From Amphiscolops sp. MND2022 (taxonomy: Eukaryota), in the NCBI GenBank assembly GCA_964187785.1, contig OZ076415.1:51026001-51090000 (forward strand): DNA of 64,000 nucleotides, read 5' to 3'. Numbering within the stretch: the first letter of the stretch is position 1; every line of letters starts with the position of its first letter. Shown here piece after piece: positions 1,301-25,000 of this stretch. The notes beneath the pieces are model-generated. The model had not been told where the DNA came from and did not search any database. It saw nothing but the letters and a program-made list of their open reading frames with translations. The position numbers and the translations under genes were made by a program.

Positions 1301-1914
1301 CGTTTTTTCACAACGTTAATTTGAAGCATTCCTCTGTATAAATCAAACTTTGCTCAGAAAAACTATTAATGTGTTTTGCGAGTGCTAAAAAGTCAATAAT
1401 TCAAATCCTACTTGACTGCTACTTTTTAAGGATCGTAACTAATTTTCAGTTGAGGGACTGAATGCCCGGTAACGACTCCCAGGAAGTACTTTCCTTTGTT
1501 TTTTTTTCTGTTTTCAAAGTGAATTTTCTTGAGTCAGCACCGCCTGTGACTGCGCTGGATTTTAATTGTTAGTGCAAAACCTCAAACTTCTACGCTACTA
1601 GACGAAGAGATGTCTTGCAAGATTCACTTCTGACCTCTTGCATGCTGTACATGCCCCTTTTCTCTAATGAGCTACAAATTCAAAAAATCTAACAGAAACT
1701 TTCGGAAACTTTTTTTTGAGGACCTCATGTGAAATGTGAAGAAGGAGAAAAAAAAACCCAATTTTTGGGTTAAAAACTAAATTTGAATCATATCGTTGGG
1801 TTTTGAGTAGAGAAGTTGGAAATTTGGGAATCAATGTTTTTATTTATAATAGTGTCAGCAGTTTGTGGAAATCAGGGAAGTGAAAATTTTTGATCATTCT
1901 TTGCCGGACAGCTT

Positions 1915-2047
1915 TCATGCCAGCAAGGTCAAAGAAATAGAGCAGATAGAGTGTTGCTTCAGAGATCGAGGCATGCATTCGTCGAGTTGCTTCATTTTGC
2001 TAATGCAAACACCAGGCCCCTTGAAACTGAACGTTGTGAACATATAC
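1915..2047 (-). CDS. C-type-lectin-like domain, terminal exon
   Basis: Acceptor TTGTTTAG|G at 2048/2047. Reads (R)YMFTTFSFKGPGVCISKMKQLDECMPRSLKQHSICSISLTLLA*, supplying the last three CTLD cysteines. Phase 2 matches the donor at 2712. Confidence 0.7.
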
Positions 2048-2712
2048 CTAAACAATGATACGGAATCAAATTATGTGTAGAACAATAAAAAATTTTCTAA
2101 AATGTTGTTTCTAACGAAAGCCGTCAAAACGGTTCGAAAGTTGACAAGAAAACATCGAAAACCAGCAGTAACAATTAAAATATAACGGTAACAAGTAAGT
2201 AAAAATCACTTTCTCTTTTTTTCATTCCAATTTTTTTTGACTGAATAGGCCTCGAAACTGATCTTAGTTCGCAGTGGAAAGGGCTGAAGTTTTTCCGAAA
2301 AATACTTTCAAAGTGTGGAACAAATGCAGGCAAGAATTTTTAACCAAATGTGATTTAAAGGTGAAATTCAGAAAGGAATACACGTTTTTGAAGAAAAATG
2401 ATTGAACAAACGTCAAAGTTTCAAGTCCTTTTTCTTGAATATTTCAAAATGTTGGTTCTTTTATGGTTACGAAAATTCGACAATAGATCAAATTTCATAG
2501 ATGTTCCCACGCTTTCAGTTCTCGTCTCTAACAACTGGAACAACGGAACAAAGTCTCTAACATCGCTTTTTGAACTGTTTGTCTCCAAGCGCCACATTCT
2601 AATCTGTAAAATTCGGAAAAAATGCCAGAAAGAAATATTTTGAAAATTACATGATGTCAAAAATGAGACATTATATTATGAAACAAAACTCGGGTGAAAT
2701 AAGCTGACAAAC

Positions 2713-3164
2713 CGTGACATCCAAAAACCCTCGAAAAGTGCCACATTCTTCTCTGAATTGACATCCAAGTGCCCATCGATGCTTTTAAATTGTGGAAACT
2801 GGGTAGTGACTGGTGCCTGTCGCTTGAAACCTACATGAAGAAGTGTGTTGTATGTAACCACATCCGATAATTCACTTCGAGTACTCTCGAAAAAGTCCCA
2901 AAGATACGCGATTTCGTCGAACGTTCTAGGATACGACAGTATGGCACCCTGCTTTCCACAAACAAAGGCCTGTTTTGAAAAGTTGAGTCCCGGCGTTGAA
3001 TGTTCTACGATGAAATAACACCTTTTGAAACCGAAATTATATACGCCTCTGTTTTGCGAGCAATCATTGCGGACAATGAAAGCGAGGTCCAGTCTAAAAA
3101 TGTCACTTTGAGTTGAACGCAATTGTTTGAATTTCATTCGCGAGAAAGAGACCTTGTCAGATAC
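2713..3164 (-). CDS. C-type-lectin-like domain, N-terminal exon
   Basis: ORF 2676-3203 contains NDC-x13-RCYFI...NFSKQAFVC..GAILSYPRTFDEIAYL...LHVGF...FKSIDG, the long-form CTLD pattern (CY, C-x3-GAxL, WIGL-like, FxWxDG-like). Donor CG|GTTTGT at 2713/2712 and candidate acceptor TTCTGCAG|GTA at 3165/3164. No signal peptide or credible start codon. Confidence 0.7.
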
Positions 3165-3739
3165 CTGCAGAAGGGTTTCCAGGTAAACCTTCTGAAGCTT
3201 CACTTTTTAGTGCTTTTAGACGCTTTTCGATTAAGTCTTTTATGACGGACAGACACTTTGTTACGTCTTCCACGTTTTTTGGTGCAATTCTATTGCATGA
3301 AGAAAAAAATAACTTGTGTTTGGACTAGTTGAGCAACATTCAGTCGCCCAAATTTTGATAAAGTTCCGTTATTTGAGACAAAAAGTTACTTGGTTTAATC
3401 TCAAGGAAAACAACGTAATTACTGATTCCCCCATTGATGGATTAGGGTTCGCCCTAGTTTTTATTTATACAAACAACAGTGGGATATAGGCGTTGCAGAG
3501 ACATACGCTAGGGTGCCAAAAAGTACTCGGTTTTTCGAAGTCTTTAAATTTATTCATTTTACAAAAAACTCAGATGAGAAAGTCTTTGAAAATTTAGTCA
3601 GAATTACAGCAGTAATTTTTGTATTGAATCTCTTCAGAATTTTAAAAGGAGTTTACCTGGATAAAAAACTCATTCATGATCATATTGAGTATGATGTCAA
3701 AAATCAAATAAAAGTAATCGATTGATTTATAAAGTCTGT

Positions 3740-3990
3740 GGAATCTACTCATAACATCATTCTTGGTGTTCTACAATTCCTTTGCAAAATGGACCTACTC
3801 TTGCAGAATACTGACAAATGTATGTGCAACGAAACACGATATCGATAGAATTGAAACAACCCAACGAAGACTACTACGCGCAATTTGTTCCAGAATTGTG
3901 TATGATTGTATTGGATGTATATTTCAAGAGAACAAAAGTTCGACTGACTCAATTTATTTTTAAAAACATTCCATAATATTTTCAAAACAT
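3740..3990 (+). mobile_element. LINE (non-LTR) RT C-terminal remnant
   Basis: CATKHDIDRIETTQRRLLRAI resembles the post-RT segment of CR1/L2/Jockey-type ORF2 and parallels 32280-32360. Confidence 0.45.
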
Positions 3991-4543
3991 TAGGAATTGA
4001 ATCGCCTCTCCGTTTACTTACTGGAGATGTGAATTGTTCATATCCTATTAGAAGACCCCAACAGAAAGTAGTAACAAGTACTTATAGTCCCGCTGTATAT
4101 GTCAGTAGAAAAAAATTGCATAGAACCAACAGTTGGCATGGAGTCAATAATTCGAATCAAAAAGGTATCAACTTTAGCCAGCTGTAAATATAAAGCAAAT
4201 AATACCTACTCCCCACTTGTTGGTGTTTGGTCAATTCAATGTTCAAGTACTTTACGTCTAATAGGCCACAGCAGAGTGCATGAATGGGAACCTAATGCAA
4301 ACTTCATTTATAATATTTTGTTTCTGCCTAAAATTTTTAGCTCTTGTTCTATTTGTACTTTTTTGTTGAACGATGTAATATGAATGAGAACTGATTAGTT
4401 GTAAGATTGAACACAGTGGAAACAAGTGCGAAGCAAATATGGAACGCGTTCAACATCTACTCTGCTATAGCTCGTTGGACGCATTGTCCGAATTCGCGTT
4501 AACTGATAAGACTGCAGTTATTTTCTTATTTTCGTAGTACATG

Positions 4544-5777
4544 CAGGGATTTGCATTAATTAACGGTGTTTCCATTAAATGTCACTTATTAAATGCACTA
4601 AATGAATGACCAAGCCTCAGCCGGTACATTAAATGAATGTGACCAATCAAATTAATGCATTTAATGAATGCTGTATCTTTCATTTAATTAAATAAACCTC
4701 GTATAAAACATATACTGTTCGTTCACGGTTCATTCGAGCTATTTACATTCAATTTGACAGCAACTGCACATCAATTTGCACGTTCATATTCAGGGGTGCC
4801 TAAAATTTAATTGCCCTCCATTTTTCTAAAGTTAACATTACAAATTTTGTTCATTAAATAACAACGACTTAAACTAGGATGATAAATCGAATATTCCTAT
4901 TAACAATAGACCGATTGCGAGCGAATACCTCATTTCCCGCGGTCCGTACTCCAAACGGGTCACGAGGGGATACTTTTTGCGACAATGGGTTCATAGAAGT
5001 GATAGTCGTAGCAAAAACTAATTTATGGCCCGGGCCAGGAGGGGAAGATGAAAGAGCTGATGTCTGATATCGATCGCATTGAAAGTGTCAACAAGCGACT
5101 GCAGCTCAGCGAGACAACAATGTTGGAGGCACGAATTTTATTCGATAGTATCATCAAAACATTTGGTGCCAAGTACAAAATAAATGACTACCTTGCGGAA
5201 ATGGTTCCAATTGTACAATCTCCCATTTTTGAAGATGGTCTTATTAAAATGGCACGCAATGAAAAACTCAATGCACAAGAAGCATTGAAAATGGCAATTT
5301 TCGAAAAAGACGTGTCTGAGGAAACTGTGAACGAAAAAATAAAGTTTTCACCACTGCTTTTCTAGCAAAAAAAATCACAATTGTCATGTGTCTCCTCATA
5401 CAAAGACATTCAATGGATTCCTCCCACTTCAAATCGATTGGAAAGATTAAAGATTTTTCAGCAGAGTCAAATTTGTTTACGGAGGCTATCGTCAAAAGCT
5501 ATTGCCAAAAAAACTTGGAGGCTCAGCTGTTTTTGACCGATAATCGTTCATTTTGGAACCGAGAAAGTGTGCAAAAAATGCTCAACGGCGAGAATAAATG
5601 AACACTTTTGTAACTTTAACTTTCTTTCCTGTAATTAATGAATTTTAATGTACAATAATGTATTAATTATTGTGTTTCGAAAGATAAGTGCATTTATTGA
5701 ATATGGTCAGCCAAAGTAATGCTTTTATTGAATTTAGGGTAACCAATAATAATGCATTCTTTTAATGCAAATCCCTG
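4544..5777 (+). mobile_element. Non-autonomous hAT DNA transposon
   Basis: Perfect 16-bp TIRs CAGGGATTTGCATTAA (4544-4559; reverse complement 5762-5777) flanked by an exact 8-bp TSD AGTACATG (4536-4543; 5778-5785). Confidence 0.88.
4930..5601 (+). pseudogene. hAT-like transposase remnant
   Basis: IESVNKRLQ..TMLEARILFDSII...YLAEMVPIVQSPIFEDGLIK (5048-5365) inside the TIR-bounded element; disrupted upstream and downstream. Confidence 0.5.
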
Positions 5778-6259
5778 AGTACATGTGCATATACTGTGGT
5801 GAAACAGACTTAACGTCCTCTACGCTACCGTTCTGTTTTTTGATTGACTGCATTAAGTGTTATACTGTTTGTTTTGTTTTGTTACCTACATGTAATGTGT
5901 GTAGTAGTTTTTCCAAATAGCCTCATATAGTTCAAATGACGAATTGTGACGTCATGTCAAGATACCCTGATGCTGTGAATAGACAAGTACATAATAAGGT
6001 GTTACTATAAATAGTGCGATGACCTTTATTTTCATGATTTTCATGCAGTGCTCGGGTTTTATAGTGGACCACTGATGAAAGGAGGTTCATAATTCTCTGA
6101 TTGATTCGAAGCGCAAATCCCAACTCTCCTTCAATACGACGTGTGCTTTTAGTCTGCGCTTCATGAAGTGAATCGCGACTATTATAGTGATTCTTTTTTT
6201 TCTTTCCACACGAACCGACCAAATTAGTTCTTAAAAAGTTCTACAAAAAACTATTGCAC

Positions 6260-6712
6260 CAAATTGCACTATTTCGCCTACCGAATTGAACCAAAACGGT
6301 TCTTCCTGTTTTCCCGCGTACCATGCCATACCGGGCGAAACCAAAGTGTCCCCCCTTTCGTTTTTTTTTCGTCACTGCGAGACTTTTTTTCCCAAAAAAG
6401 TCCCCCTTCTCTTTTTTTGCTGTTTTGCGTCAGAATGGATGTTGGAAAATCCCAAAGGTTTTTCTCTTACAGTTTTATTCGGCACTGTGAGATTTTTTTG
6501 CCGAAAGTAAAAATTTTCCTCCCTTCAATTTTTTGATGTTTCGCCAGTCGATCCATTTTTTTTCGAGTATGTAAATTTTTCGAAATTTTTTTTTCCGAAA
6601 AAAATTCGATTTTCGAGAACTGTAAAAGAGAATACTTGACACTTGAAAGTGTTTTTGCTATTTTTGAGCCTTGGATATGGCGCCGACCGGCTTAGGCCGG
6701 TCCCGGCTTGTT
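6260..6712 (+). mobile_element. Helitron/Helentron-like 3' terminus
   Basis: Hairpin GACCGGC-TTAG-GCCGGTC (6685-6702) followed by CTTGTT (6707-6712). A related sequence occurs inverted at about 50455-50520. The left boundary is approximate. Confidence 0.45.
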
Positions 6713-9700
6713 ATTTATTACAATATCACTTTCTCTGTACAATATTACGTTTCTGTTGAGTTGTAATTAAATATTCTCTCTCAGTATTTGAAAATTCTGG
6801 TAACCAATATTTTTTCCATGCCTTAAACATGTGAGCAAAAAGCCAGAGAAAAGCTCTTCGGACAGTCAGACGGAATTTCTGATTAAAAAAACTTGGATCT
6901 AACTTTGGGCAGCTGTTACATGAATGAAGTAGGAAGCCAATTCAGTAAAAACAAGGAAAACGTGGACTGTTGTTGACCTAAATACAAGGAAGGCTCGGGG
7001 AAATCAGCCGAGAACAATAAGAAATAATTGCAATCGAAGATGTCATAGTAAGAGAAGCCTTTTCAGACTCTCAGAAAAGTGACAAGGCTAACGACAAAAT
7101 GATAGATAGCTTTGTTAATACATCGAATTTTAATGTAATTCCAGGATTGCTCGAAACATCTCTCTAATAACTTGAAGGATAAGCGCTGAAAAATGATTTT
7201 CCAGCTTTCATCAATAGCGTGGGGAAGAAACGAGAAAAGCTGCTTAATCTCTTTTCCGACCTTGTTGGATGATTCATCTATAAAACTGAACTCTTGTTAT
7301 TTGTTTCGTGTACAATCTTTCAAAAAACTTTCTTTGATTTCCTGTATTTTAGTCAAAACAATATTTTGACACAAGAAACTTGGAGATTCCGCAATTGTGA
7401 ATAGTTTTAGGTGTAAACTTTTAAGGAAGACATTTTCAGAAAAAGTGGTAGCATGAAACGTTAGATCTGAATCAAAAATTTGATTCAAATGTTCAAATAT
7501 GGTCCCAAAGAGTTGTTGTCTGGAGCAGCGGTTCTCAAGATATTGCAGAAAAAAGTTCGAAAAACGCCAAAATTGGAAATTTGGCGAAACGTTTTGTTAG
7601 TTAATTTTTGTAGTATGAATGTGAGTTTAAAACAGAATCACCCAGCAATTCTGATTGAAAGGTGAGAAGGTATTGGTTGAATTTTTTTTGTGTCAATTGA
7701 TTATGGAGAATTTTTTTTCGATGTGAGAGATAAAATCAAGTGTCCTAAGTTTTTTCTTTTTGTCATGCCAGAGTGCATGAATAGAATGAAACAAAACTTT
7801 CAGAAGGAGAAAAACGTCCGGCTTATCCGGTCGCCAAATGTTTACCATTTACATGCAAATCAATACAAATCAAACTTTTTTCTGTTATGAAGCATCGATT
7901 CAAACAATTTAGTAGCTTTCAGACCCATTACGGTAAAAGGATTGCACATCTCACCAACAACCATTGTCGTTGGTCATCATTTGTACTCAAAGCGTCGTTC
8001 AGCATACATTTAGAAAATATTGTTCACCATTGGAAAACTTTGATAACCATGGTTACAAGATCAATCATTTACTGCTATTAACACATGCAGTGTGAACTAC
8101 TCAATAATTACTCGAACTGGTATGGAATAGGTTCGAATGAACATTTACGTGCAGGTTTGACCGTGATTGACAACGATTACAACAAGCAGTCGTAATTGCC
8201 CAATACTTAACACCTGGTGCAAAAACCAATCAAAATGCATTTATTAACGACGCCCAATTAGAAGTGAGTATCCGCAAAAGGTACAAATGAAAATCAGTAA
8301 AGTTTTTGTTGACAACAAGTACAGGCGCTCCCGCTGACCCATCTTAATTTTTTAACACTATTACCATTTTATCACATCATTTTCTTTCCAAAGAACCTTC
8401 CAATCCTCAATTCAACCCTTAAAACTCAACATTGCGTCGCACAACCCTTACTTTTTGAAAAGAGCGGAATCGACTGTTAACCGCGGTATTAAACGCTGCG
8501 GTATTAGTCCCTGAATTCCGTGCAGCGAATTCCGCTCTTTTCGGTTGGTATGTTTTAAAACTTGGCCCAGGATTCCACTGCTCAAACAGCTCAACTTTTA
8601 GCCGCACAAAAGTTTAGGGTTATGCGTCGTAATGAAACAAGTTCGTATATGGTAATCTTCAGAGCTCAGAGCGCAAGCATCAATCAATCTATTCATGGAT
8701 GAATATGGAAGAATATAATGCCAACGACAGAGATATCAGTTTACCCGGAAATAGTTCGCAGAACTTGAATGTCAGAAACAATGGCCAACCAATGATCGAC
8801 TGTGAGAGAGACCATGAAAGAGTTCGAATTGAGCAACGATCCAATAACATCAATCGACAAATTGTAGTATCAACTTCCTTAGTACGAACTTTCACCGAGA
8901 AACAAGCCTCTAGTAATTGAGAACAGAATGGCACTAATGCACAGCAATTTAAAACCCCCAGTCATTCTGACACGTACCAAAATGTATCTCACCAACTAGA
9001 CATCTATACTCGAGATATATGAAAAAATTTGTCCGAAAAAACCAATACATTTTAATAACCAGATTCTTCTCCGGTAGCTGTGTAACCTTTTGGACACCTG
9101 AAAGGAGTGGGCCATTTTGGTGCTGTAGTTGGTGCGGAAATGAAAACAAAACATCCAGTTGATTAAGGCTTTGAATTATGCAATTTGATTATTGATTTAA
9201 AAAAAAAACAGAACATTTGGGTTGCATTCTCAGTCGGATCCATTTGTCTTTTGTTTTGTGAAACCTTCCTGAAAAGCATTCGCGACAGTTTTTTTTACAA
9301 CTGCATACATTATCCGAAAGCTTCTCTCTTCAACCTTTTCGGCTGAAAACTAACGCAATTAATTGAGGGCTTAATTCGGACGATTAACTCTTGACTCCAA
9401 TGTTCACTACACATCAGTACAAAAATTACTCCGTTGAAAATCACTTGAACAAAACCTGATGTTTCAGAATTGGCATTTGATGTTTCTTGGAGTTCATGTG
9501 AAAAACTTCCAAAAATAACGAAACCTTTCGGTCTGTATTTATGGCAGATATTCGTCTTGAAAGTTTTAACGGTGGCTTGGAGGGCGACGTTTGATAAGCA
9601 ATCGGTAGTTTTACCAACTCAATTTTCCCTATTTTTTTCTTCAATTATAATCAGAAAATTTCTCGTGAAGCGAAATGAAAAGGACATGTTCCATTGATAT

Positions 9701-10019
9701 AGAGCTACTTCATCGATACCTGATTACAAAAAGAAGCAATGAATAAACTTGTCTTTCTTCTAACGACCGCTTTCAGTACTTTCTGTTGGAAAAATCTATA
9801 GAAATGTATGTAATAGGAAAGAGTAAAGTCTTTTAGCCCCTAAATATAAAAGTTCATAAATGACGTTCATAAAAGACGTGTAGCTACAAGAAAATATAAT
9901 TTCGCAAATGAATGGACTTTTATTGCTGTATTTATTTTTTCATTGCTGGCCTTTCATGTTTTCCATTGACGCTGTTTTAGTACTTTTTCGCAACATACTA
10001 CAATTGATGTAGCATCTCC

Positions 10020-10952
10020 TCAAGTTATACCGTTATTAATTTTCCTGGAATCCCCTACTTGACTAAAGCCAACGGCCACGCCTCCGTCTTGTATCGAAAC
10101 CAGCACTCCGGACGCCAGCGTGAGAGACAACAACCACAAAGTACTTTTGATCACAGAACACGAAACCAGGCGGGCGCTTTTTTTGTTAGGCGAAGCTTCA
10201 GTTTTTCCCATGTGTCTGGTGTTTTGAGATATTCGAGGAACTTTGATGCATAATACAAGCTTCAACAGAGTTAAAACTCGCTGTTGAAACGATTTGAACA
10301 GAATGAGATACAAGAATGGGTTTAGTTGAGAGTAAAGCACCTGTATTGATGGCAACGAGATGAACAGATACACCAAAAACGTATTACCACCCTTTCCCAG
10401 ATTCCGGCTCAAGGGTTGTGAAGGAAGTTGCATAAAGTTGATGATGAATTTTGGGGCCCAGCATATTGCCCATGAACACCAGCTAGCGAAAAAACAAATC
10501 GAAAGGTTACGGTTGCGCTCAGCATGTTTCTCTTGAGTTCGCAGTGTTTGGATGATTTTGAAGTACAAATAGCCAGACAAACAAACTGGTATCAGATAGA
10601 GCACAAACAGATCGATGATCGTCCTCCAGAGGGGTCGTAGCTGCCACAAGTTACAACGGGCAACGAATTTGTTGAAAGGAAAAGACTGTGAAGAAAACGA
10701 CTGAACGTTAAGCTTCCAGAACTTTCGAAAACTTTTTTTTTCAAAACTGTTCCATATTTCGAGTTTATCAAAAGTATATATAAAAATTAATGAAAAATTT
10801 CGATTCTCTAGGATGACCTCTTCGGTTTTTTGCTGGTGAGGATGAATGAGCATCTTCAAAAAATTTGTTTCAAACCAAAAATTCTTGAATTGAGTGGGGT
10901 GTCTATTTGGACCGTTCCTGGCATGTTTGTTGTTGGAAAAAGTCTTTTTCAA
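10020..10952 (-). CDS. Orphan class-A-like GPCR, ECL2-TM5-TM6-TM7 plus an extra C-terminal hydrophobic helix (N-terminal half decayed or missing)
   Basis: FVARCNLW (ECL2 Cys), IIDLFVLYLIPVCLSGYLYFKII (TM5), NLSICFFASWCSWAICWAP (TM6 CWxP), IQVLYSQLNPFLY (TM7 NPxxY), then LVSCSVIKSTLWLLSLTLASGVLVSI. Confidence 0.82.
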   Translation of the reverse strand: MKKTFSNNKHARNGPNRHPTQFKNFWFETNFLKMLIHPHQQKTEEVILENRNFSLIFIYTFDKLEIWNSFEKKSFRKFWKLNVQSFSSQSFPFNKFVARCNLWQLRPLWRTIIDLFVLYLIPVCLSGYLYFKIIQTLRTQEKHAERNRNLSICFFASWCSWAICWAPKFIINFMQLPSQPLSRNLGKGGNTFLVYLFISLPSIQVLYSQLNPFLYLILFKSFQQRVLTLLKLVLCIKVPRISQNTRHMGKTEASPNKKSARLVSCSVIKSTLWLLSLTLASGVLVSIQDGGVAVGFSQVGDSRKINNGIT

Positions 10953-11719
10953 GCCTAAAGAATCTCGTTTTTGCGTTTATGTTTGTTAGATGACTTTGGT
11001 TTGAGTTCGAAATAAATTATAACGAAAAAAAACTATTCCACAAAAGAATCTCATCCTTCTTTGATGCGTCAAGCTAGAAAATTTTCATTAGTCTGATCAG
11101 CCTTAGTTTTTGTAACCTTTTAAGCTTTTACAGCATTGTATTGGTTCATGGTTTTTTCACCCACGTGAGGAATTCGTATCTCTTCGGTGACAAAGTTCTG
11201 TATCTTTTCATAGACAATTATATCACTTTGAGAGAAAAAAACTTGCTTCAATTGAATTGATGACTTCAAAACGAAGTTTTTCAAAGAGTTTTATCCAAAA
11301 TGTTTCAGATGTTCCAAAAAGGGCGTGAGTTTGGGCTCTCATCAAAATCGCTCAATGTTGTGTGGATCTTTCATATATGAACATTAACACTACCGTCATC
11401 GTTAGGTATGGAACAACAAAAAAGAAAAGATTTTGAAATTACTTTTTGACCTTGTATCCGCGTTAATGTAGATTTAAGCGGCGTTTGATTTAAATCAGGA
11501 TCGCCCTATCTATTTTACAACTTGAAAAATTTTACCGATTTGATTTTCTACTCTTTTCACATTGAACAATATTATTGGCTTCTCTTATTATATACCTGTG
11601 ATCTTTTACTTCAATTACCGTCCCTCACCCATTGCCTGAATGTCTAGACTTATATACACAAACTTTGAAAATTTAAAGTGCAATCAAGACAAATCTTTTT
11701 CTTTCCTTTCTCATTTCTT

Positions 11720-12055
11720 CTACTTTCTCTACTAACTACACTGGTTCGATATGCTTCATATTGGTACAAAATTCTTTTCTTCTGTACTAACCACGCAGGT
11801 TCCAAACTGTTCATATCAGTGCACATTTCCTTTCTTCTGTACTAATCACTTCGACGTGAATTGACAGCCTTGTCGGTACACCAACCTTCTGTAACAATCA
11901 CATAAAGTGATTAGGCATATTCGTCGGTACAAATTCGTCTCGTCTATACTAACCACTAAAATAAAGTTGTTCGACCTCGTAATCGGTACAAAATAAAAAT
12001 GAATCCTTCTGCACTAATCCTTTTGGTTCGACTTTTAGTCGGTACATGTGTTCGT
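11720..12055 (+). repeat. Degenerate ~55-60-bp tandem array in the 5' leader
   Basis: About 6-7 recurrences of TCGGTACA...TTCTGTACTAACCAC-like motifs (e.g. near 11761, 11816, 11869, 11923, 11980, 12038) with variable sequence between them. Confidence 0.6.
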
Positions 12056-14169
12056 ACAAACCAAAACGATTACTACTTCTGATGGTACAAAAACACGTTT
12101 CAAGTTCTTTTCTTAGCTACAATACTTTCAATGCTTTCCTAAACGATTCCGTTTGTATTGTTATGATTTCGTTATATATTTTTGGGCTAACTGCAATCGT
12201 TGCCCTCGTCATCGACAAAATCATTCTTGACTTCAACCCCCGCTAACCTAACTTTCCCAGTGTTTCCAACTGAAAACCTTGCTACCATAATCCTCTTTGT
12301 TTCATACATTTTTGCAATGCTTGTTTTTAAAGGCTTTCCATTGAAAAAAATGTTGCTTCTCTCTGTCACTAACTCTTTCTTTCTCTGTTTCTCCACATTC
12401 CTGTCCCTTCTCCTCTTTCCCAATCCAATCTTTTTTCCAGCTCCTTTCTCACACCCTTTCTTCCATTCATTCCTTATTAACGTAACCTCCATTAACCATC
12501 CAATATATCTTCCCTCCTCACCGGTATTTCAAGATTTTGATCCTCTTAACCTTTATCCCCTACAGAGCACTAACACAACTTTTCATTACTACCTCTACTA
12601 TCAATCACTCCCTAACATTCTCTCATACACATCTCATCTTTTATTCTCGAATTTTGCTCTTCAAAATCTACATTTTAACGAAGACAATCATTCACGAAGA
12701 CAATCTATCTTCCTCCTTTAATTCCACTCCCAATTTCCTTGGATGACACTTATCATCGTCTCTCACGGGGAGTTAAACAAAATCATTCCAAGTTTTTAGT
12801 CAAACTCATTAACAACTCCACAGCCCCACTTCTTTTTGAAACTTACTCCGACGATATTTACAACCTACCTCTAATTCGTGAAAATCATCATTCATATTTA
12901 TATTTCATTGATACTAACACTTCAACAGCAACATCAGAACGTCTTATTTCCATGCCTTTCACTTCTCCTCTCAATTCCAATCAAACACTCGGGAAAACGT
13001 TTACCATACTCTTATATACATACCCATTTCTCATGTTTTCATTACCTTTTTAATTTATCTCTCTGAACAAAGTAACCTCTAAGCCCTACATGCTTTCTTT
13101 CCATCTGCCATACAGATACTTTTACAAAAAGAATCTCTTTTTGATCTCTCCAATACGGACTAACTTCGCACTGTTAAAGCAAACCTCATTATTGGATTCA
13201 AAACGTCATTCTTCAAAATCTTTGTTTTCAAAATCTTTTTCCTTCAAAATCTTACCTCAATGTCAACAACTAGAAAACAAATTCGACATGACTCGTATTT
13301 TCTCCGAAAAATTATCAGACATAACTACCAACTTGTTACAGATACAAAATTCCAAAACGCATGTGTTAACGTAAACTCCCAATTTCCACACGGTGTTCTA
13401 CTCCCATTCTACATCTTCAATTTTACAATCTTCTGGATTTCCCACTTACCCTATTCAAATACTTTCAATTTGACAATCACAATCTTGATAAAAAGCTTGA
13501 ACTTGCTCTTCCTGTTAGACCTTATGCAAAACATAGCCTTCAACCTCAGTCTCTCTAAACTAACTCCCTACAAACATATACTTCAACGTCAAATGTTTTA
13601 GTAACAACTCATACCGTTGGTAATACTCCTCCAAATCTTGATCTTCTTCGTCACCGTTCTTGTCACATCATATCACCCAACCTCCTATTTCTCATTCACC
13701 ACAACAAATTAATACTTTTTCTGTCAAAGCCCTCCTCCTACTACCCCCCTATAACTACTCATCCTTGCATGTCTTATATGTCACAATTTCACCAACCTCT
13801 TCCCCCAGATCCACGTTCTTTTCATACTACAGTTACCTACCGGCCACGATCTCATCCTTCTTTACCATCTTTTTCTCCAAGTGTTTCGTCTTCTAATCAC
13901 TACCCTCAACCTTCACTTTCAACATCTCAAAATGCTTCTTCGAGTCCTCCCTTACCTAATCCTCCTAATGTATCTGATGATCTTAACGCATCACTCAACC
14001 CACATTTTCATAACTATCGCCAACTTTCTTATCCCCCTCCTTTACCTCCTAACTTTCTTCCAACATCTACTTATGTATACATGTTTTTCGCACCCTCCTC
14101 CACCTGTCTTTCAAACGACTCCTTCCGTTTGCTGCCATCTCAGACCCCAAAAAAAAACATTTTGATTGC

Positions 14170-15330
14170 TTGGATCATACGTATCCTCCTGAAAAGTTCT
14201 TAACTCAGCTCGGTGCTCGCGTAACCTTTCAATTCGGACCTCAACCTCTTTATATTCAATCATATTCAATCTGGCACTCCAGTGTATGTCTCTCCTTTGT
14301 TGTTCCTATACAGGAACTGCCTCCAATTGAGTTGATCGTCTCCCCATGTTCATAAAGAAAGTTGGTCATCTTCTCCGAAGTTTCAAAAAACATTTCTACT
14401 CTCAAAAACATGCATTTGAAACCTAACTGGAAACGCTTTAATTTGTTGAAAAATACAAAATTCTACGACATTAAGTATTAAAAGTTGCAACCTTTTTTAC
14501 ACAAGGCTTTTACAACGAATGCCCATCAACTTTAAATCGTAAATAAAATGAATGTTTTACCAGTGGTCTCCCCAAACAATCGAAAGACTTTGCCAACAAA
14601 CGCCAAGTTAAACGTGTTTCTAGTTTTCTTGAACCTTACATTCATTTTCATTCGCTTGTCAATATAGTTGACTCTGAAGATACTCCGCTTGAAAAGTTTA
14701 AAACTCAAGAACTTTAACTTAGAATTAACTCCCTTACCGATAAACTTCAGCAAATGCTTCTATTGAAAAATCTCTCATGAATCTTCAGAATAACATGCCG
14801 TAGATCCTAATAACAAGTCTAAACCTCAATTTAGAAAATACTGTTCTTTCGGCAGTAAAAAAACCATTCCGGTTCTACTTTTTATCACAGAATCAGTATG
14901 CTTAAAGAATCAAAACCTCAATCAAATTCACCTACCCGCTCCTTTTTATCAATGTTTCAAACATTTCAATAAATTAATAATCAAACTGCTCGTTTTTGTA
15001 GTCGAAGTAATAACAACTCCCATCCAACGTCTTCTCGACAAGCTCGATGCACATCTCGTTCACACTCTCCATTTCACGTTCAAAGTTTCCGATAGAAGTT
15101 TTCCTCATTTTTAACCCTATGATCGTAATCGATCCCGCTTCCATCAATAATATACAAAATCTCTCCAAAAAAGATTTAAACTTCACGCACAATCTGCGAT
15201 TGTAAATCTTCTCGTAGCGCTTGTATATAGTACCCCCGATATCGCAAACGCTCCTCCATCTATGATATCTCATCGATTAGACGATATAAGTCACCATACC
15301 GTTCACCCTCTAAATCACGTACAAATCGCT
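14170..15330 (+). pseudogene. gag: gag-like region (decayed)
   Basis: MDHTYPPEKFLTQLGARVTFQFGPQP at 14170 and an Arg/Ser-rich tail at 15.1-15.3 kb, directly upstream of the protease motif. Confidence 0.5.
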
Positions 15331-15559
15331 ATCGAAGTCGTCACATTCAAATTTTAATATACACAGCACTTGTACCTACAAACCCACAAATAACCTAACG
15401 CAACAGCCCACTTTATAACTCATAATCAACACACCACAGAATCTAAATTTGAAATTATTATGTATCATTCAACCGCTTTGCCTCCTTTGACATCTTTCAC
15501 TCCAACAAACAACGATGCTAACCTCATAATTCCTCCTACTTTGTTTGATAATATACATC

Positions 15560-15910
15560 TTCAAACCTTCCGAAGCCTCCTCTTTACCTCCTAAACCAGA
15601 ACTCTTATTTTTGTTAGACAGCGGTGCTTCCATTTCTGTCTTAACTTTGCCCTTTTTCACTATATTAGCTGACCACTGTCTCAGATGTTCAAAGTCTCCT
15701 CCTTTCAATAATAAACCTAAATAAAATTAAAACTCTAACTAATGCAAACAAAGCTGGAGTCGCCATATTTTTCAATATACTTCTTAAAATACACACTTCT
15801 ATCTATGGAAGTACTCGCACTCTCAATAATCCAATTGCAGTAGCAAACTTAAAATACAACATTCTTGGAACACTTCCACTCGTAAAATGTGTTAGAACAC
15901 TAAATATTGA
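15560..15910 (+). pseudogene. pol: Retroviral-type aspartic protease (decayed)
   Basis: LFLLDSGASISVLTL at about 15605-15650 (DSG active site) and VANLKYNILGT (ILG motif) at about 15840-15872. Confidence 0.78.
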
Positions 15911-16479
15911 GCAAATGTCACCTGCATTTACCACACCACATGAATCTCAAAGGGTAATGCTCTCATCATAATTTTTTACTGTTCATTCATATTTCATTTC
16001 AAACGCAAACCAAAAACCGCTTTAAAATACGTTATTATTTGGGTAAACATGAATATGTTTTACCCATACAAAAAATGATTCACAACCAATTCTTGTAGAT
16101 TACGGTGATGGTTAAGTTACACTTCGCATCCAGAAGAAAGTCAAAACTGTTACTTACACTTGATTCTTTTTCATTTCAATCCGCATCCACCTTTCTAGAT
16201 ACATTCAAAAAACCCATTAAAATCAAAGTCGAGACATTACTCCTACAAAATCCACGTTTAAATGAAACTGATTTATTTGGCGATAATTACCGTGTTACTA
16301 AAAAGATTCCCAAACAAATGTTTCAAAAAACTAAACTTTCACTCACTATCAATAACATTCTTCTTGAAATTCAACACCAACACTTTTATGACTCTCATGA
16401 TTTGTACACACTCATTTATACAACTCCCTGACAAATCTCCTTACACCACTCCAAACCCCTCTTAAACCTACATCTACTC

Positions 16480-18064
16480 AATCATTGCCGTTTATGACCC
16501 ATCTTTTTTGCTCATTGTGAAATTGGAAATTTTCTTCCCTCGTAGTAAAAATTTTTTATCGAGACCGATTCTCATACAGGCTCAAAAGGATGATCTTGTT
16601 CTTACCATTGTTTTTACATAGTTGAAGCAAAAGTAACTTTTTTTACCTTTTTTTACCTTATTTCCAAATATTGAAGCTAGCTCCTTTCTATATACTTACT
16701 ATAAACAATTTCAACAATTATGTATATACCCAAATTCTTGCTTAATTGACTATTACACACCTAATTCTCGTATATTTTAAGCTTCAATTCACCGAACTCG
16801 CGTTTGTTTATCATTCAATCTTTTTTACGCCGTCTTTGACAAAACCCATGGTCATCACGTGAAAAACTTTCTTTGAAAACTACTTTCAACCAATTTCATT
16901 ATAATCTACACCCATCATCATGGTTTTTTGTCTTCATTGATGATTTAATGAGTGCCAAACAAACAAACTCTTGCTTAACAAACATTATAAAACTTCTTTT
17001 CAACTACCATTTTTGGAAGCGCCATTTGTTTCAATTTTAGAATTTCAATGGACCCAAAAGACCTACTTCGCCTTTGATGCAAAACAACTCTCACATTTTT
17101 GTAATCATTGATGCTTTCAGTCATTTTGTGATTACCAACCATACACATCAAACTTCTAAATATTCTATTCAACACTCCTCAACCGAATAATTACTAAACT
17201 TGCCCCCCCTCATTGTCTAGTCACTGATAGAAGTAATGAAAACATTATTCAAGATATGGACCCACCTTTCCTCTCTTTTCAGTATTAACCACAATCCACG
17301 TACTACGTAATCTCCTTGACCAAACAGTTTCGTTGAAGTCCAACATCGTAGACCTGGATCTCATTTACGCTTTCTTTTATACAAAATCCTCCTCGAAATT
17401 GATCATTCCAAACCCAAGTGTACGTTTATGCTCATAATACAACTCCTCTTTCTCAACTTGAAGTTTCTCCATACCAACTTGTTTTTCATACACACCCTCG
17501 TCATCCCTTAACCTTTTCTCTTAGTTTACTACGCCACTCTTGTATTATTGTGATCCATGTTCACACTCATTATAGTGATCACGATCCTAATCGTTTCTTT
17601 TTTTTCTCATTAATAAGTCCTATTCCTCATGATTTTTATCGGCAGAACCTGCAATGCTAGAAATATACTTCACTGCTCACAGACATTTTATTAAGAGATT
17701 ACACTTGCAAAACTCTACGTTTGAAACCACTCATTCAAAACAGCTGCTGGTCAAAACATTTGTTATGCACACCTATTTTGAACCTGTCAAATTGTCAAAT
17801 AAGCTCAAACATCTTTGCCCATATAAAAAATTTCAACATCTCTCAGAAGTTATATATGAATTTATGACCCAAGATGACTCTACAGTTCAGACCCATCGTT
17901 CTCACATTTTACATCATTATCCTAAAGAACTTGTTATTTTCCCATACATCAGTCAATATCATTATACTTCATCACTCTTAAGAAATCCTGGTACTGATTC
18001 TTATCAAGATGACTTATCTCAATCATTTCACTCAGATCAAGAGCTTACCACTGGAACCTTTTAA
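16480..18064 (+). pseudogene. pol: Integrase (decayed)
   Basis: ISMD (17043), FVIIDAFSHFV (17098), LVTDRSNE (17218), SP*PNSFVEVQ (17311) and YAHNTTPLSQLEVSPYQLVFHTHPR (17427): DDE core of the Gypsy type. Confidence 0.8.
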
Positions 18065-20039
18065 ATCAAACTCTTCTACTAAAACAGTTGCACAATATCG
18101 AAATGTTTTAACTTCACCTCAAAGTTATCAAATCCCCCCGGTTTCTCATCTTGCTGAAAACCCCACAAATAATATACCTTTCCTTGAACTCCTTCCCTCC
18201 TTGAATTCTATCCACGCGTTCGTTGCAGACTCTACGTATCTTACTTTTGAATCCACACATGAAAATCAGACACAACCTAATCCCATTAGAGCTCCTCGTT
18301 CACCTAATAATTAACCCGGAACCTACATTAGGTCTCAAACTAATAAAGGTTTTCCTCCCTAATATAAATTTCACAATGTATCTGCATTTTATTTCTGGAC
18401 TTAAATTGACTTGCCTCTTGTCTAGAAACATTATTCTTTACGCGTCTACCATAGGTCATTTCAAAAAATTAGCCATTCATACGACAACGTCACAATCAAT
18501 TCGTATTAGCCTTTTGACGATTCAGTTGGCTAAAAAATTGCTAATACATCAATTGTCAATTTCAAACACCTTTATTTCATCCGGTAACTCATTAGGACAA
18601 ATAAACTTTACACACAAGCAATAAAAATTTCAATTTTCATTAAAATCTTAACTAAGATTACTTCAACTCCGTCTGTTTTCATCCTGGATTCTCTTGTTGT
18701 TATATCCCTTGTTATAGCAACCAATGCATCAAATTTCTCTTCTGTTTCCACGGACACGATAAACTTCTCTCATACCTACTCTTTACACCGTCTCCTTCTA
18801 GATTCTATACCTATCACAACCTCCTGAGACACTGCTCTTACTAATACTATTCAACATACGCCTAAAATCTCCCATTAAGCTAACCTCGCAACAATTTCCA
18901 ACTCTTCCTTTTCCTGATACTGATTTTACGTTCACTTCATTTGTTATTACACCAACTCATTCTCTACCTCTTCATCATGTTCCGGACCCAAGTGATATTA
19001 GTCCAATACTCTTAAGAATTTTTAATGAACCTTTGCCCTGTAAATCCATCCTAATACCTACATCTAATAAAAGTCACCGTAAACAGTCTCAACTTGAATA
19101 TACTCTTTGTGACGTCGGTTCTACTACCTTTTCTCTCCTCTATCCTTTTCCCTCCTCTAATTTCGCGTCTCAGCATACAATTTCATCTTGATAACAATCT
19201 CGAATTCCCCTCTGAAACAATTATCAGCAGACCTCTACGTCATAGATACAACCTTCATTCTAGCTACAACCCTACACGTTTAGCAAGTAATAACTCCTCC
19301 TTAGAACGACATCACGCTCAACCTCGTTCACCAACGTTTTCATCTGATGTTCTTATGTTCTTTCTTCACGAGAAATAATCCAATCTTCTGGTGTAGACAC
19401 TGCGTTTTCACAGCACTCCTTACACTCTTCTTTTTATACTACCGGACCTTTTTTCTCTCCAGCATTGTTACAAACTCCTAGCCTTCTCTAATTCGAAAGT
19501 CCCCTTCAAAATTTTAATCTTGACACCGATCAATACCCAACTCCCCCTACACCTAATTGTCCTAATTACCCCTTTGTTATTACCGAAACTCTTGTTTCTC
19601 ATCTTCGTCAGGATTCTCGATTTTTTATCTCGCTACTAACAAGTTAAAGTCCAATCTTCATATATCAGAAGAACGCAATCGCAAAGAATTCCAGCAATTA
19701 GACGCTGCCAATCTTGAACTTAAATTAGGAATCACTGCTATCTTCCATATAATAAGTTTCCATCCGATTCTCACACAATCGTAAAGTTCAAATCTCTACC
19801 ATTTCTTCCTATTGTTAGAAATTGGGATCTGTTTGTAAATGATCATCCTCTTTTTCGTCTCCTCCATGGTTTTAAATCTATTTCGCAATACTCTCACAGT
19901 TTTGAAATACGCCGCCCGATTTTGATTCTTTTTTCTATGATCTCTGAACCTTTCTATATTTCCTTTTCCTCTTCTTCGCTCTCACATACTTTGTTCCACC
20001 TAACTTTTCTACCGTTTCTCAAACAGATAGAATTGAACG

Positions 20040-22010
20040 CAATGATACTCATTTCTGTGACTTTTTGGTTTCTCATCGTGATTGTTGAAAACAACATAAC
20101 CTCCACCAATTTAGTTTAACTCGAGTTCAACCATGTGCTTCGGCTCCTTCTTTCTTGGAAAGCACATCTGCTATTGCTAATGTCTTCGACCGCGCCAAAT
20201 ATAAACGTCTCAAAGAATGGACCTGTGAAGTGTATGTTAATCGAGAAAAGTTTGTTTGTACTCAATCCGAATAAACATATCGTAACCCTGACCGTACTGA
20301 TTATCATCAAAATACAATGTAATGTCCTCGTCCTTTACATCCTACAAAATGCAAACATGCAATTTGTCACCATAACGGAACTGGCCACCCTCAACTTGAT
20401 GCTTTTGTAGTTAGTAGCTCTTTTACCTTCCTCGATGATCTTCAAAAACAATGCCTCGAAACTAAATAGCCTCCTTATTGTATAACAAACACAAAACCTA
20501 CCATGACGGTGCATTTAGTAGGATTAAAAACTCTGAACTAGACTTAAACGCCACTCTTATAGAAAAAGCTGTCTGTTGAGACCGTTATGAAAACGTAATT
20601 GAGAAAGTCAGTTGGACTTTAGTTGTTAAAGAATTCGAAATCACGTATGATGATAAAGATAGAAAATTATTCTTGCCCCAATGATAATGGTTTTTGTAAA
20701 CCAGCTATTTTAACACCTTTCACCATACTTTGGGTCCTTGAAGATCTATGAGTCCACTCTTTCATAGAACAAAGGTCCAAACTTAATTTATTGGCTCAAA
20801 CCCTAACTTTTTTCACAGTAACTCTTATTTTCCTCCTAAAACACCTTATTATGATACCAAATCTGAAACTCGACTTTTTGAAATATTCCCCGAAATTAAA
20901 ATGTTTTATAATAAACCCACACCTTTATATACTACTCAATATCCTGATCTCTTTATCACAAATAAAGAAGGTTTGAATAGGCACACTGGTCAACGTAATC
21001 TTCTTCAAATACTCGAAGATGAGCAATATGATCGACTCTCTAATCAACGCACTTCTGGTAAACTAGTTCAAAATGAAAACAAACTCCTTCATCCTGTTTT
21101 AACCTCATCAATAATTTTGGAACTATTGCCTATAAAGCTCATTATAATACAAAACATGACCATTCTCTTATTCATATTTTTAAAACTATGTCAATTGCTG
21201 AACTCATCACCCTTGACACTATTTTTGATGTGGAACGATCTCAACTTTCAACTATCCTCGGAAAGTCTGTTAAAAATTCACAATTACATGGTTTTCTCTT
21301 GAATCGAAATCATAGTAATTTTCTATATGTTAAAGGCTCAACCGCCTAGGTCTATGATTGTCCTCATCACCGTTCTCCGCTATATATCGATGAACAACGT
21401 CCTGATAAAGTTTCTGTTAACTACCTCGACCATGTCACTCGTCAAACTTCTCGAAGTGGCTAACCCAGATCCTTGTGAAAATAATCCACAAAATGTAAAT
21501 TTCCTTCATCCTGATAGTGACCTATATTCTGTTACAACTGGGGATCCTACTATAAAAGGACCCTCCTCATTTTTTGATCCTACTCAAATGCAAACTGCTA
21601 TTCGCCCAAACACATTTACTGCTCAAGATGAATGCATGCATTCTGAACAATAGTTTATACAAGTTTGGAATTGAGTTCTTTTTTCCTAAGCACTCCGATA
21701 ATACACTTCAACTTCTTGGTGAAGCCATTAGTAATGAATTTATGCGAAAACAATCGTTTCAACTTCTCCACGATAATCCATAAAGTACTCTGCGAATTGG
21801 TCTTCATGACTATATGATGAACCTTAATCTTTTTTTAATCCTGAATGGTTCACAGATGCTTTTATTAAACTCTTTGCAATATGGAATGTATTTTTCCACT
21901 TCAATTTGCTCTCAATGCCCTTCACAAAGTGTACCGCTTCTTCACTGTTAAAAGAACTCTCAGAAAACAAATCACTTTCAATTCGGCTTTAGGGTATGGT
22001 TTCTTCGAAA
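20040..22010 (+). pseudogene. env: Envelope-like glycoprotein resembling chuvirus/gB class III fusion proteins (decayed)
   Basis: Signal-like MILISVTFWFLIV, then DC..QFSLTRVQPC, CEVYVNREKFVC, CPNDNGFCKPAILTPFTILW, DVERSQLSTIL, FLYVKGSTA*VYDCP and VTRQT...PCENNPQ. Confidence 0.62.
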
Positions 22011-22020
22011 CTGTAAAACA

Positions 22021-25000
22021 ATGATGACTGCTATGATACATCATTCTTCAAGTTCCAATTCGGATAATGCAGAAAATGAATCTGATTCACTTCCACGTCC
22101 TCACCCCAAATCTACCATGACTACCACTTCAAACAAAATTACCACAATACCAATTTTAAACCCAGTTTCAAACAAAATCATTGAACCTCCAAAATACAAA
22201 TTCCATGAAAAGATCTTTACCTATAACATCTTCTCCTGTTTCTTACTTTCTCCGCAACCCCACCCGTAACCACTCCTTTGTTAGCTGAAGATAATTCACT
22301 TCCTCGTTCTAATTATTATTTACACACTTATCCGATAGGTCTCTCTTCTCTTCACTCCCAATCGCCTCCATTAACATCTCCTCCGTATTTGCATAATTCC
22401 ACCTCCCCAGAAGTTACCATTTTTGACACTTTCTCTAATAACTCGCCAGAGCACAATGTACGGCAATCAACCAATCATTACCATCCTACTCCACCATCAA
22501 TGAAGTTTAATGACATCTCATTATCGTCTGTCAATAGTATTTTTATCCAACCACTGGAAGCCCTGTTGAAACTTTTTCATCTTGTCGCTTCCCACCTGAA
22601 ATACTTTAACCCTTTTCTTTATGAATAACTTTATTAAATTATCTCTCTTGTTGCCTCCGTTGAAGCTGCTTTCTCTTCCTCAAAGTTTAATTTCAAAAAA
22701 CGAAATATCATCTATAATCATCTACTCTTCCGTCAACTGTAACTTTTCCACAACCATATACTCTCACACCAAACTGTTTAATATCGAAACATCCTTTTTA
22801 CCTTCTTTAATCACAAGTAATTTATCATTCATTTGTTTGATCAAAATACAAAAAATGACTTCACCTCAGTATGAAGCAGGACTTTTGTCAAGCTTCGCCT
22901 AATTTTCACCCCATCTTTTGCTCAAATCATTGAACTTTCTAATCTTGTTTCTGAAACTACCAGCAGTACTGATTTTATTCTAACTACTGATCGTACACTT
23001 CCTACAATTCAACCTTGCTCTTCTACTCAATATCCTACTTTCTCCACTGTCTATACTCAACCTTTTTCGTCAACTCCCAAGACCCGCCATTCTCCCACTC
23101 TTCAACCTACTAACCTATAAGTCGCCATCGATAATTACACCACTCCCCAAAAGGAAAAAGATTAATGTTTTAGAAAATCCCGTTTTTAATGAATCGGGTA
23201 TACTTCCTGCTCTATTTTGCATCCGTGTAAAGATATTCATCAAACTAACACTCCCACTGTTGAATTTCTCCGTACTCAATCAAACTTCAACTCAATCTTT
23301 CACAAGACTCCTACAACATACAAATTCCGTTTTTCACAAGATCGTAACTTTGATCACTATGATGCATATGTGTCCAAAATTTTAGAACAACTCTCTTTCC
23401 GGCAAACTAAACGCATATGTTTCTTTCAATTTCAATTCAATTTCCTAAAAACTAATCAACATGAACTTAACACCGACCCTAATGATATCACAATCTCTCC
23501 TTCTGTAACAAAACTCCACCATAAAACACATCTTTTTCTTGAACAAAAAAACATCCTCAAAAATTTTTCTTTCAAAACCACTTAAATCACCTGTATACTA
23601 TCGGTATAATTTGAAACTACAATCCATTTGAACAATACTACATCCGTGCTCCGTACTATGATCCTACTCGTCCCCTTTTTGTTCCCCAAGAAGCTCTTAA
23701 TCTTAACGATGACTACATGTTTAAGTAGCTCCTAACACTGATCCTTTTATTATTCACAATCATGTTTTTGATACCTATAGAACTCAAAATCTCCTCCAAC
23801 TTCATACGAAAGAAGTCCATGCTCTCATTATGTCTACACTACACGTCAAAGACTTCCTGAAAAACTGGTCCTTCTCAAAACTCCATCTATTTTTGTCTCA
23901 TCCTTTTGAACTCATCGTTTTCACTCCTTCCATTATTTCTCTTCTCATTTCCTCCACTCATTGCTTCAAACACTTGCTCATTACTGAATTTCAAACTTTC
24001 AAAAAAGGTGAACACGTGTTTCTCTTGGAATTCTCTAATTCTCAATTTCAGTTTTTCTCCATTCTTTTTTAATCTTACTTTTCTCTAATTCTTTGCCTTC
24101 TCAAATCGTAATTGTAATCACTTTTATTCTACCTTTCAATCACTAGTGTTTCATTATATTTGATATCTATCAAAAGTTTATGTCACCTGTACTTTTTTGA
24201 CATTTCCCGTGCAAAACTTTCTTCCTCATTTTGTCTCCTAATATTTTCACCTTCTCTTACCACAGAAAGAACTCGTTAGGTTTAGAATGTCTAATACAAC
24301 TAATGTTGTCTTCAAAATGCAATTTTTTTCCTTCTGACAAAAACACGTCTTCAATAATTTCCTAACTTGAAAGTGTTTTGTTTCGACTTTATTTTCAATG
24401 AGTCAACTTCCTCAGTTCTGGAAAATCTAAAAAACCTAACGAAATCCAAACTCTCATATTTCGTCTACAAGAGTGTTTTTGGTCATAACTTGAAAACTCT
24501 GATATTTTATAAAAGAAATATCAACCTAACTCAACATAACTCAACCTCTTCCACATCACTCCAACATTTTGGATCTTCGAATATTCCATTCTTTTTGATG
24601 CTTCTTTGAAAAGCCTCAAATCTTTCAAGACACCACTTTATTCGCGCCTTCTTTCAAACAAAAGACTACATCACAATTTAAACTAACACTTGACAAAACA
24701 TTCACAAAACTAAATATTTACAATAACTGTGTTTTAGTATTCACTATTGAACTCCATTCATCATTTCAACTTGCCTTTTCTTGCCTCTTTTGTCATCGTT
24801 CAATCCTCTACCCAAGACGGCATACCCTCTTCTCAATCAACTGTTGGATTCCATCACTTCCACTTCCATATTCACTTCCACATTACCACCGATCTCGTGA
24901 GTGTTCTGATAATTCTTCCTCCTCTTTTTGTCTATCTTTTGCCACTGGTCCATTCTCTGCACTTTCGTCTGACCCTTCTCCTGTTCCACTTTTCCTCAAG

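Follow-up and report, generated by a model that had tools for sequence, protein, structure and literature searches.

A probable acoel receptor family in which a class A-like core continues through an eighth helix into a C-terminal C-type lectin-like domain

G protein-coupled receptors (GPCRs) are usually taken to have their N-terminus outside the cell and their C-terminus inside, and to our knowledge every well-known GPCR that bears an ectodomain carries it at the N-terminal end. An extra helix on a seven-transmembrane (7TM) core can move a terminus across the membrane, as in the 8-TM enzymerhodopsins (rhodopsin-guanylyl cyclase and rhodopsin-phosphodiesterase), where the core is based on a microbial rhodopsin, the added helix lies at the N-terminal end and enzymes in the cytoplasm make up the appended domains. 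A GPCR and a C-type lectin-like domain (CTLD) can also work together as separate proteins: the transmembrane (TM) helix of the type II CTLD protein CD69 contacts TM4 of S1PR1 in cis and activates the receptor (PMC9949048; PDB 8G94). Here we describe a locus in a stretch of 64,000 nucleotides from the acoel Amphiscolops sp. MND2022 (assembly GCA_964187785.1, contig OZ076415.1, positions 51,026,001 to 51,090,000 of the forward strand), which we call the window and in which coordinates are counted from the first letter. We consider it likely, all parts taken together, that the minus strand of the window holds an intact, single receptor gene of four colinear, phase-compatible exons; that this gene belongs to a large, fast-evolving, acoel-restricted family with a class A-type GPCR core; and that the encoded protein, with seven helices followed by an eighth (TM8) and a C-terminal CTLD, amounts to a rhodopsin-like receptor joined covalently to a type II C-type lectin receptor.

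Each of the known systems shares a part of this layout. Like the predicted acoel protein, the CD69-S1PR1 pair places a class A GPCR beside a single-pass helix, N-terminus in and C-terminus out, with an extracellular NK-type CTLD in one membrane. The pair is made of two polypeptides, however, and CD69 is a disulfide-linked dimer, whereas the acoel protein is one chain, with helix 8 and a basic linker connecting its two parts. Type II C-type lectin receptors (ASGR1, DC-SIGN, CD23, LOX-1, CLEC-2, NKR-P1) have the same succession of basic cytoplasmic stretch, TM helix, helical neck and long-form CTLD, and the predicted acoel domain reaches fold Z scores of 13.6-14.3 against them. Unlike these receptors, the acoel module has no free N-terminus, continuing instead from a 7TM receptor, and it lacks the EPN/QPD and WND motifs and a Pfam Lectin_C match. 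Latrophilins and other adhesion GPCRs, polycystin-1 and the LGRs likewise have a ligand-binding ectodomain built into a 7TM or multi-TM signalling core, but their ectodomain is N-terminal, whereas the acoel domain is C-terminal and would be brought outside by the extra helix; the adhesion and polycystin-1 types also have 7tm_2/GAIN or 11-TM cores, unlike the class A-like core seen here. With the enzymerhodopsins the acoel protein shares the added helix, and it differs from them in the end that carries the helix and in having a predicted ectodomain in place of cytoplasmic enzymes.

When spliced in order, exons 28327-27638, 10685-10059, 3164-2713 and 2047-1915 (A to D, all on the minus strand) give 634 codons with no internal stop, and every intron is GT-AG with matching phases. 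Exon A (27638-28327) runs from the start codon (28327-28325) through the N-terminal tail and TM1-4 (TM1 approximately 28144-28091; TM2 28072-28004; TM3 27886-27800, ending in WIRY; TM4 27760-27695) into the start of extracellular loop 2 (ECL2), and ends at the donor CCA/GTTTCA, the slash marking the splice site here and below. This exon is placed from the open reading frame (ORF) 28483-27599, a colinear paralog exon with 71% identity, and tblastn of family members. Intron 1 (10686-27637; 16.9 kb) is packed with old dispersed repeats that are strongly pyrimidine-rich on the plus strand. Exon B (10059-10685), which sits in the minus-strand ORF 10952-10020, supplies the ECL2 cysteine, TM5 (10628-10551), TM6 with CWAP (10505-10440), TM7 (10379-10299) with NPFLY at 10322-10308, an amphipathic helix 8 (10298-10251), the basic linker and TM8 (10145-10092). 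Its acceptor, TTCACAG/TCT, is kept in the closest paralog, and its frame reaches ...GFSQ before the donor CAA/GTAGGG at 10059/10058.

Intron 2 (3165-10058; 6.9 kb) falls between TM8 and the neck, a position common to three paralogs (FSQ/V, FVQ/V and FSQ/V), and ends at the acceptor TTCTGCAG/GTA at 3165/3164. Exon C (2713-3164), whose frame opens with VSDK and carries neither a Met nor a signal peptide, encodes the neck plus the initial two thirds of the CTLD, including cysteines 1-3, the conserved GLNFS sequon and the motifs LSYPR and LHVGF. Intron 3 (2048-2712; 665 bp, phase 2) begins at the donor CACG/GTTTGT (2713/2712) and ends at the acceptor TTGTTTAG/G (2048/2047), and the paralog copy of the longer string TTGTTTAG/GTATATG is identical. 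Exon D (1915-2047) is 90% identical to the paralog exon and carries the last CTLD strands, the other three cysteines (4-6, in FKGPGVC...DEC...SIC) and the stop codon at 1917-1915. Similarity searches with family members located no further family exons inside the introns. An earlier note on this DNA had already described the GPCR frame near 10 kb with its NPxxY motif, later hydrophobic stretch and phase-0 donor, and the six-cysteine domain behind the 3165/3164 acceptor, without a signal peptide and completed by the phase-matched exon 2047-1915; all of these features are present at those places. It missed exon A, and the 'TM7-like remnant' that it placed near 3420 resembles the 10-kb exon no more than expected by chance (best E 0.14-0.17 in blastn and tblastx).

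We compared the gene with its closest paralog, at C7:33.27 Mb, the protein of which is 76% identical to that of the window gene. In the paralog the four exons recur in unchanged order, separated by introns of 3.6, 0.62 and 0.46 kb, with splice sites at the same codons and two acceptors that are letter-for-letter identical. Given that the splice positions are identical and that the second intron spans 0.62 kb in this copy, the paralog supports joining across the 6.9-kb intron of the window. The earlier note had left two arrangements open, joining over this intron or a contiguous form in intact paralogs; the former is thus supported by homology for the window copy, and the latter is found in other members of the family. 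Nonsynonymous to synonymous rate ratios (dN/dS) between the two genes, estimated by the Nei-Gojobori method, are 0.25 for the 7TM part, 0.49 for linker, TM8 and neck, 0.42 for the CTLD and 0.31 overall. Based on the values for the 7TM part and the CTLD, both halves of the gene are under purifying selection.

The window's own genome was searched in six frames with two queries, the TM5-TM8 piece and the CTLD exon of the window gene, and each matched at least 150 places genome-wide. When the two hit lists were paired by hand, at least about 70 loci had both matches within a few hundred bases of each other in one open frame, with the 7TM part always first. Paralogs that link the two parts contiguously, which the earlier note had proposed to seek by tblastn, are therefore common in this genome. 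Translated examples are ORFs of 406-451 amino acids that span TM5 to the end of the protein, and several paralogs are complete single-exon genes of 620-710 amino acids, in which seven helices and helix 8 are followed by an eighth hydrophobic segment and a CTLD; one such gene, of 657 amino acids, lies at L026:1922-3892. A locus at C7:34.34 Mb that was read out has this layout too. The full-length paralogs have a short N-terminal tail and carry the lectin-like domain at the C-terminus. Mean mutual identity within the family is about 31-33%. Across 29 paralogs, the pairwise identities of the TM5 to helix 8 part and of the CTLD part correlate with r 0.80, a value reached in none of 2000 Mantel permutations; this fits a single fusion before the expansion, followed by duplication of the whole unit, with the two halves diverging together.

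A tandem cluster of the same subfamily lies just past the window, at C7:51094803-51107589, C7:51171992-51176915 and C7:51252405-51252728. Within it, the TM5-8 exon at C7:51107019-51107589 is divided between two frames, the CTLD exon at C7:51176464-51176915 has one TAG and a frame change, and the CTLD exon at C7:51252405 has four stops. Two minus-strand fragments inside the window, one resembling the start of exon B (41041-41145; E 1e-8) and one resembling the end of exon A (51089-51202; E 8e-5), are likely pseudogene scraps.

The core of the protein resembles class A receptors. Pfam 7tm_1 matches the exon B ORF over profile positions 150-260 with E 4.7e-7 and 30.0 bits against a cut-off of 30.5 bits; among the paralogs, L025 scores above the cut-off (32.4 bits) and five others score below it (18.6-25.7 bits). 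No 7tm_2, PKD or GAIN/GPS Pfam matches were found in six paralog proteins. A full-length AlphaFold2 (AF2) model has a class A-type bundle with a predicted local distance difference test (pLDDT) score of approximately 90 and helix 8 at residues 370-384, and the proteins closest to the core in fold, in AFDB and ESM Atlas, are ordinary class A receptors, for example TAAR1-like, NMU-R2-like and QRFP-like proteins. The microswitch motifs of the window protein are WIRY, in which the acidic residue is absent, CWAP and NPFLY. The paralogs have FRY or IRY (ERY in L048), CW[TA]P and NPxx[YF], with NA, NV or QP variants of the last motif in some subfamilies.

Many full-length members start with MG followed by Ser/Thr-rich residues: MGQAFDS, MGSLTTK, MGAFTTK and MGATTSA (at window position 28327 and in L026, L039, L041 and L045). 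These starts resemble an N-myristoylation signal, which would be odd for an extracellular N-terminus, and may alternatively reflect only the start-codon context.

The C-terminal domain is confidently predicted to adopt the C-type lectin-like fold in its long form, with six cysteines. An AF2 model built on a 23-sequence alignment has pLDDT above 90 throughout the domain, and all 50 of the best Foldseek matches in the PDB are CTLDs with probability 1.0. VIA-align gives a Z score of 14.3 and root mean square deviations of 2.3-2.7 Å over about 120 residues, covering nearly whole target domains, with NKR-P1, CLEC9A, CLEC-2, Reg3alpha and langerin among the targets. Among Swiss-Prot models in AFDB, the match runs through the TM helix, neck and CTLD of the type II receptors ASGR1, LOX-1, CLEC12B and CD23, and 92 of the 100 nearest clusters among language-model neighbours in ESM Atlas are Lectin_C. 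It is thus by fold that the C-type lectin identity advanced in the earlier note is borne out. The six cysteines occur at the expected places (C0, C0', C1, C2, C3 and C4), invariant or at least 90% conserved among 22 paralogs and the window exons, and on the model they would form the disulfide pairs of a long-form CTLD. The EPN, QPD and WND motifs, already noted as missing from the window domain, are also absent from 21 of the 22 paralogs, the lone EPN (in L034) being at a non-homologous position. Because these motifs are absent, we describe the domain as lectin-like rather than as a canonical Ca2+-dependent sugar-recognition domain.

In one subfamily the CTLD loop region carries acidic (Asp-Tyr)n inserts, as long as 28 residues, just before the last three cysteines (L025:1568-2476, L029:3020-3928, L044:2461-3336 and L049:2439-3296). 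These inserts could be sites of tyrosine sulfation or of cation binding.

We judged topology by hydropathy, by charge asymmetry and by the helices that AF2 models. Across all 22 paralogs measured, the strongest 19-residue segment after NPxxY has a mean Kyte-Doolittle value of 1.9-3.0 and lies 45-65 residues past the motif; the corresponding value for the window TM8 is 1.7. This segment ranks among the most hydrophobic of each paralog protein and is modelled as a helix by AF2 (residues 399-432); the 197-279 residues beyond it include at least six cysteines. Lys and Arg together average 4.2 in the 15 residues before TM8 versus 1.8 in the 15 after it, so the extra segment obeys the positive-inside rule for a helix that runs from inside to outside, the direction that the earlier note supposed for its eighth helix. 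NxS/T sequons are frequent beyond TM8 and rare between TM7 and TM8, and the sequon GLN[FL][ST] is nearly invariant within the CTLD. Based on the positive-inside rule, the conserved N-glycosylation sequon and the six conserved cysteines (three pairs), TM8 would be an in-to-out helix and the CTLD would lie outside the cell.

The BiP of the window's genome is 91% identical to that of Convolutriloba macropyga, the nearest named relative, as against about 80% for all other named animals, which marks the host as an acoel. The genome has 13 large chromosomes; Symsagittifera roscoffensis was rejected as its source, one reason being that no DNA match to that species was found. Beyond this genome, a profile of the TM8 and CTLD module was searched against 1.84 billion representative proteins and gave 121 hits. 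Among the 30 hits that were looked up, 27 come solely from ENA assemblies and two are 'uncharacterized' RefSeq proteins of S. roscoffensis. A TM5-7 hidden Markov model also matches 63 of 122 sequences, always upstream of the CTLD. Two distant relatives from other ENA assemblies have TM7 (with QPxxF), helix 8, TM8 and the CTLD within one exon. The contig of one of them also bears a piece of Sec23 that is 93% identical to the Sec23 of the window's genome, which indicates that the contig belongs to a related acoel. A second subfamily, of this distant QPxxF type, is present in the window's genome as well.

The relative in S. roscoffensis, P0101, is annotated as a plain type II protein with a TM helix, a neck and a CTLD. 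This protein (XP_063712094.1) has a CTLD of the family's special type behind a non-GPCR cytoplasmic N-terminus and a gene span of 30 kb, and no 7TM exon of the family was found within 45 kb of the locus (OY783235.1:10655062-10700833). It is either an unfused form of the module or a mis-joined gene model, and it hints at the former state of the fused partner. Searches of AFDB clusters and ESM Atlas returned matches to the GPCR or to the CTLD separately and none across both parts, word-based protein searches with the CTLD part and with the 7TM part returned only near-identical ENA proteins, and in the literature searched no account turned up of a class A GPCR that carries both an eighth helix and a CTLD at its C-terminus. 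As Pfam misses the lectin-like domain and gene callers fragment the genes, the family is invisible to routine annotation. We regard the layout as known domains in a new topology, expanded to a large family.

Several observations weigh against a working receptor of this kind. A small and possibly RNA run (X5) has no cover on exons C and D among reads mapped to 1850-7849, a region in which runs X1 and X4 behave as DNA, with cover unbroken through the introns; the B-to-C splice therefore rests on homology. Neighbouring copies in the local cluster are broken, showing that local pseudogenisation does occur. The acidic residue of E/DRY is gone in most members, so G-protein coupling is not assured. 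Of the two Pfam profiles proposed in the earlier note, 7tm_1 matched just under its cut-off, as described above, and Lectin_C gave nothing up to E 1 in any of nine translations (three from the window and six from paralogs); the best sequence-profile match in the PDB, CD69, is weak (E 0.055). In the full-length AF2 model the pLDDT of TM8 is only about 60 and that of the neck is low, which limits what the model says of where TM8 and the CTLD lie relative to the bundle.

One alternative is that the lectin-like exons are not part of the window receptor. The transcript would then read past a weak donor to the stop at 10020 (…FSQVGDSRKINNGIT), giving an eight-helix protein without a CTLD, and exons C and D would be a decaying remnant or part of another transcript. 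In keeping with this, intron 2 is 6.9 kb versus 0.62 kb in the closest paralog, the possibly RNA run X5 leaves exons C and D uncovered, and two cluster neighbours have frameshifts or stops (C7:51107019-51107589 and C7:51176464-51176915). However, exons C and D show no damage: the six cysteines and the motifs are all in place, the splice sites match the paralog's letter for letter, and the dN/dS of 0.42 for the CTLD speaks against free decay. Exon C also lacks a Met or signal peptide of its own, and 3165-10058 holds no other family exon. We regard this alternative as unlikely. A broader doubt is that the family might consist of non-expressed or transposon-carried copies, a pseudogene expansion rather than working receptors, for which one could cite the high copy number, the repeat-rich surroundings, and the family fragments at 41041-41145 and 51089-51202. 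Dozens of long, unbroken frames at about 30% mutual identity with invariant cysteines and motifs, dN/dS well below 1, and the occurrence of the layout in related species all argue the other way and make such an expansion very improbable. The segment after TM7 might instead fail to span the membrane, for example as a re-entrant or lipid-anchoring helix, leaving the cysteine-rich domain in the cytoplasm. The low pLDDT of TM8 in the full model leaves room for this, but every paralog has 19-23 strongly hydrophobic residues here, basic residues are concentrated on the helix 8 side, the far side holds a glycosylation sequon (N-x-S/T) that is conserved as well as three conserved pairs of cysteines of the kind found in secreted CTLDs, and the whole module matches type II lectin receptors. 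We accordingly give a cytoplasmic location hardly any credence.

Under the fusion of a rhodopsin-like receptor with a type II lectin receptor, which we prefer, the cytoplasmic tail past helix 8 would re-enter the membrane as an eighth helix, and the chain would go on outside the cell as a helical neck and then the long-form, six-cysteine CTLD. Having no Ca2+/sugar motif, the CTLD may capture a non-canonical ligand, such as a protein, a glycan, or a microbial or algal surface. It could control the 7TM core in cis by presenting this ligand at the extracellular face or, alternatively, by allostery, with TM8 packed against the bundle in the manner of CD69 acting on S1PR1. Given that the CD69-S1PR1 pair is the closest working precedent, we favor an arrangement in which the C-terminal module controls the 7TM core in cis. 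G-protein signalling would be the result, in chemosensory cells or in cells that sense microbes or symbionts. The size of the family, its fast divergence, and its clustered, intron-poor genes suggest a role in chemosensation or in the sensing of surface patterns. Much more tentatively, the family may be a receptor class of the acoels' own, in which an eighth helix ties lectin-type recognition to G-protein signalling, ligand binding by the CTLD is passed in cis to the 7TM core and more than 100 members (by hit counts) sense surface patterns of microbes, food or algal symbionts. Acoels have been reported to lack several conserved immune signalling pathways (PMC12849515), which makes a short cut from lectin to G protein an attractive idea.

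With its added helix and C-terminal ectodomain, expanded to at least about 70 loci, a whole gene family would break the rule of an outer N-terminus and an inner C-terminus. If made as predicted, these proteins would be a natural experiment in steering a class A receptor from its C-terminal end, and a covalent counterpart of the CD69-S1PR1 mechanism. In Xenacoelomorpha, a lineage that matters for understanding early bilaterian evolution, they would also be candidate receptors for chemosensation or for the sensing of symbionts or microbes.

Several features of the surrounding sequence were also recorded. Within intron 1, the plus strand of window positions 12000-26000 is markedly poor in G and rich in C, with a GC skew of -0.4 to -0.55 at normal G+C content. 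This stretch has no internal repeats and has dozens of dispersed copies, about 68% identical, on all chromosomes; it resembles an old, markedly strand-asymmetric transposon family, and a nuclear copy of the mitochondrial genome was rejected as an explanation in favor of such a dispersed repeat family. A milder skew of opposite sign occurs at 42-50 kb. Within intron 2, positions 6050-6850 (approximate limits) form a very high-copy repeat; in two DNA runs their summed contig depth exceeds that of the flanks by a factor of 10^4-10^5, and internal joints are numerous. The repeat is probably a satellite-like element or one resembling a short interspersed element. An ORF starting with MSTRSQK(R/K) is present in three copies on the minus strand (34488-34910, 51510-51917 and 56558-57202), one of which adjoins a gag-like ORF with zinc knuckles (55764-56666, minus strand); these are retroelement-related repeats. 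A run of masked N lies at approximately 35.6-35.8 kb. In the same genome, the mitochondrial COX1 gene (C1929:11804-13138, minus strand) contains 11 TGA codons in frame, so that TGA is read as Trp there, in line with animal mitochondrial codes.

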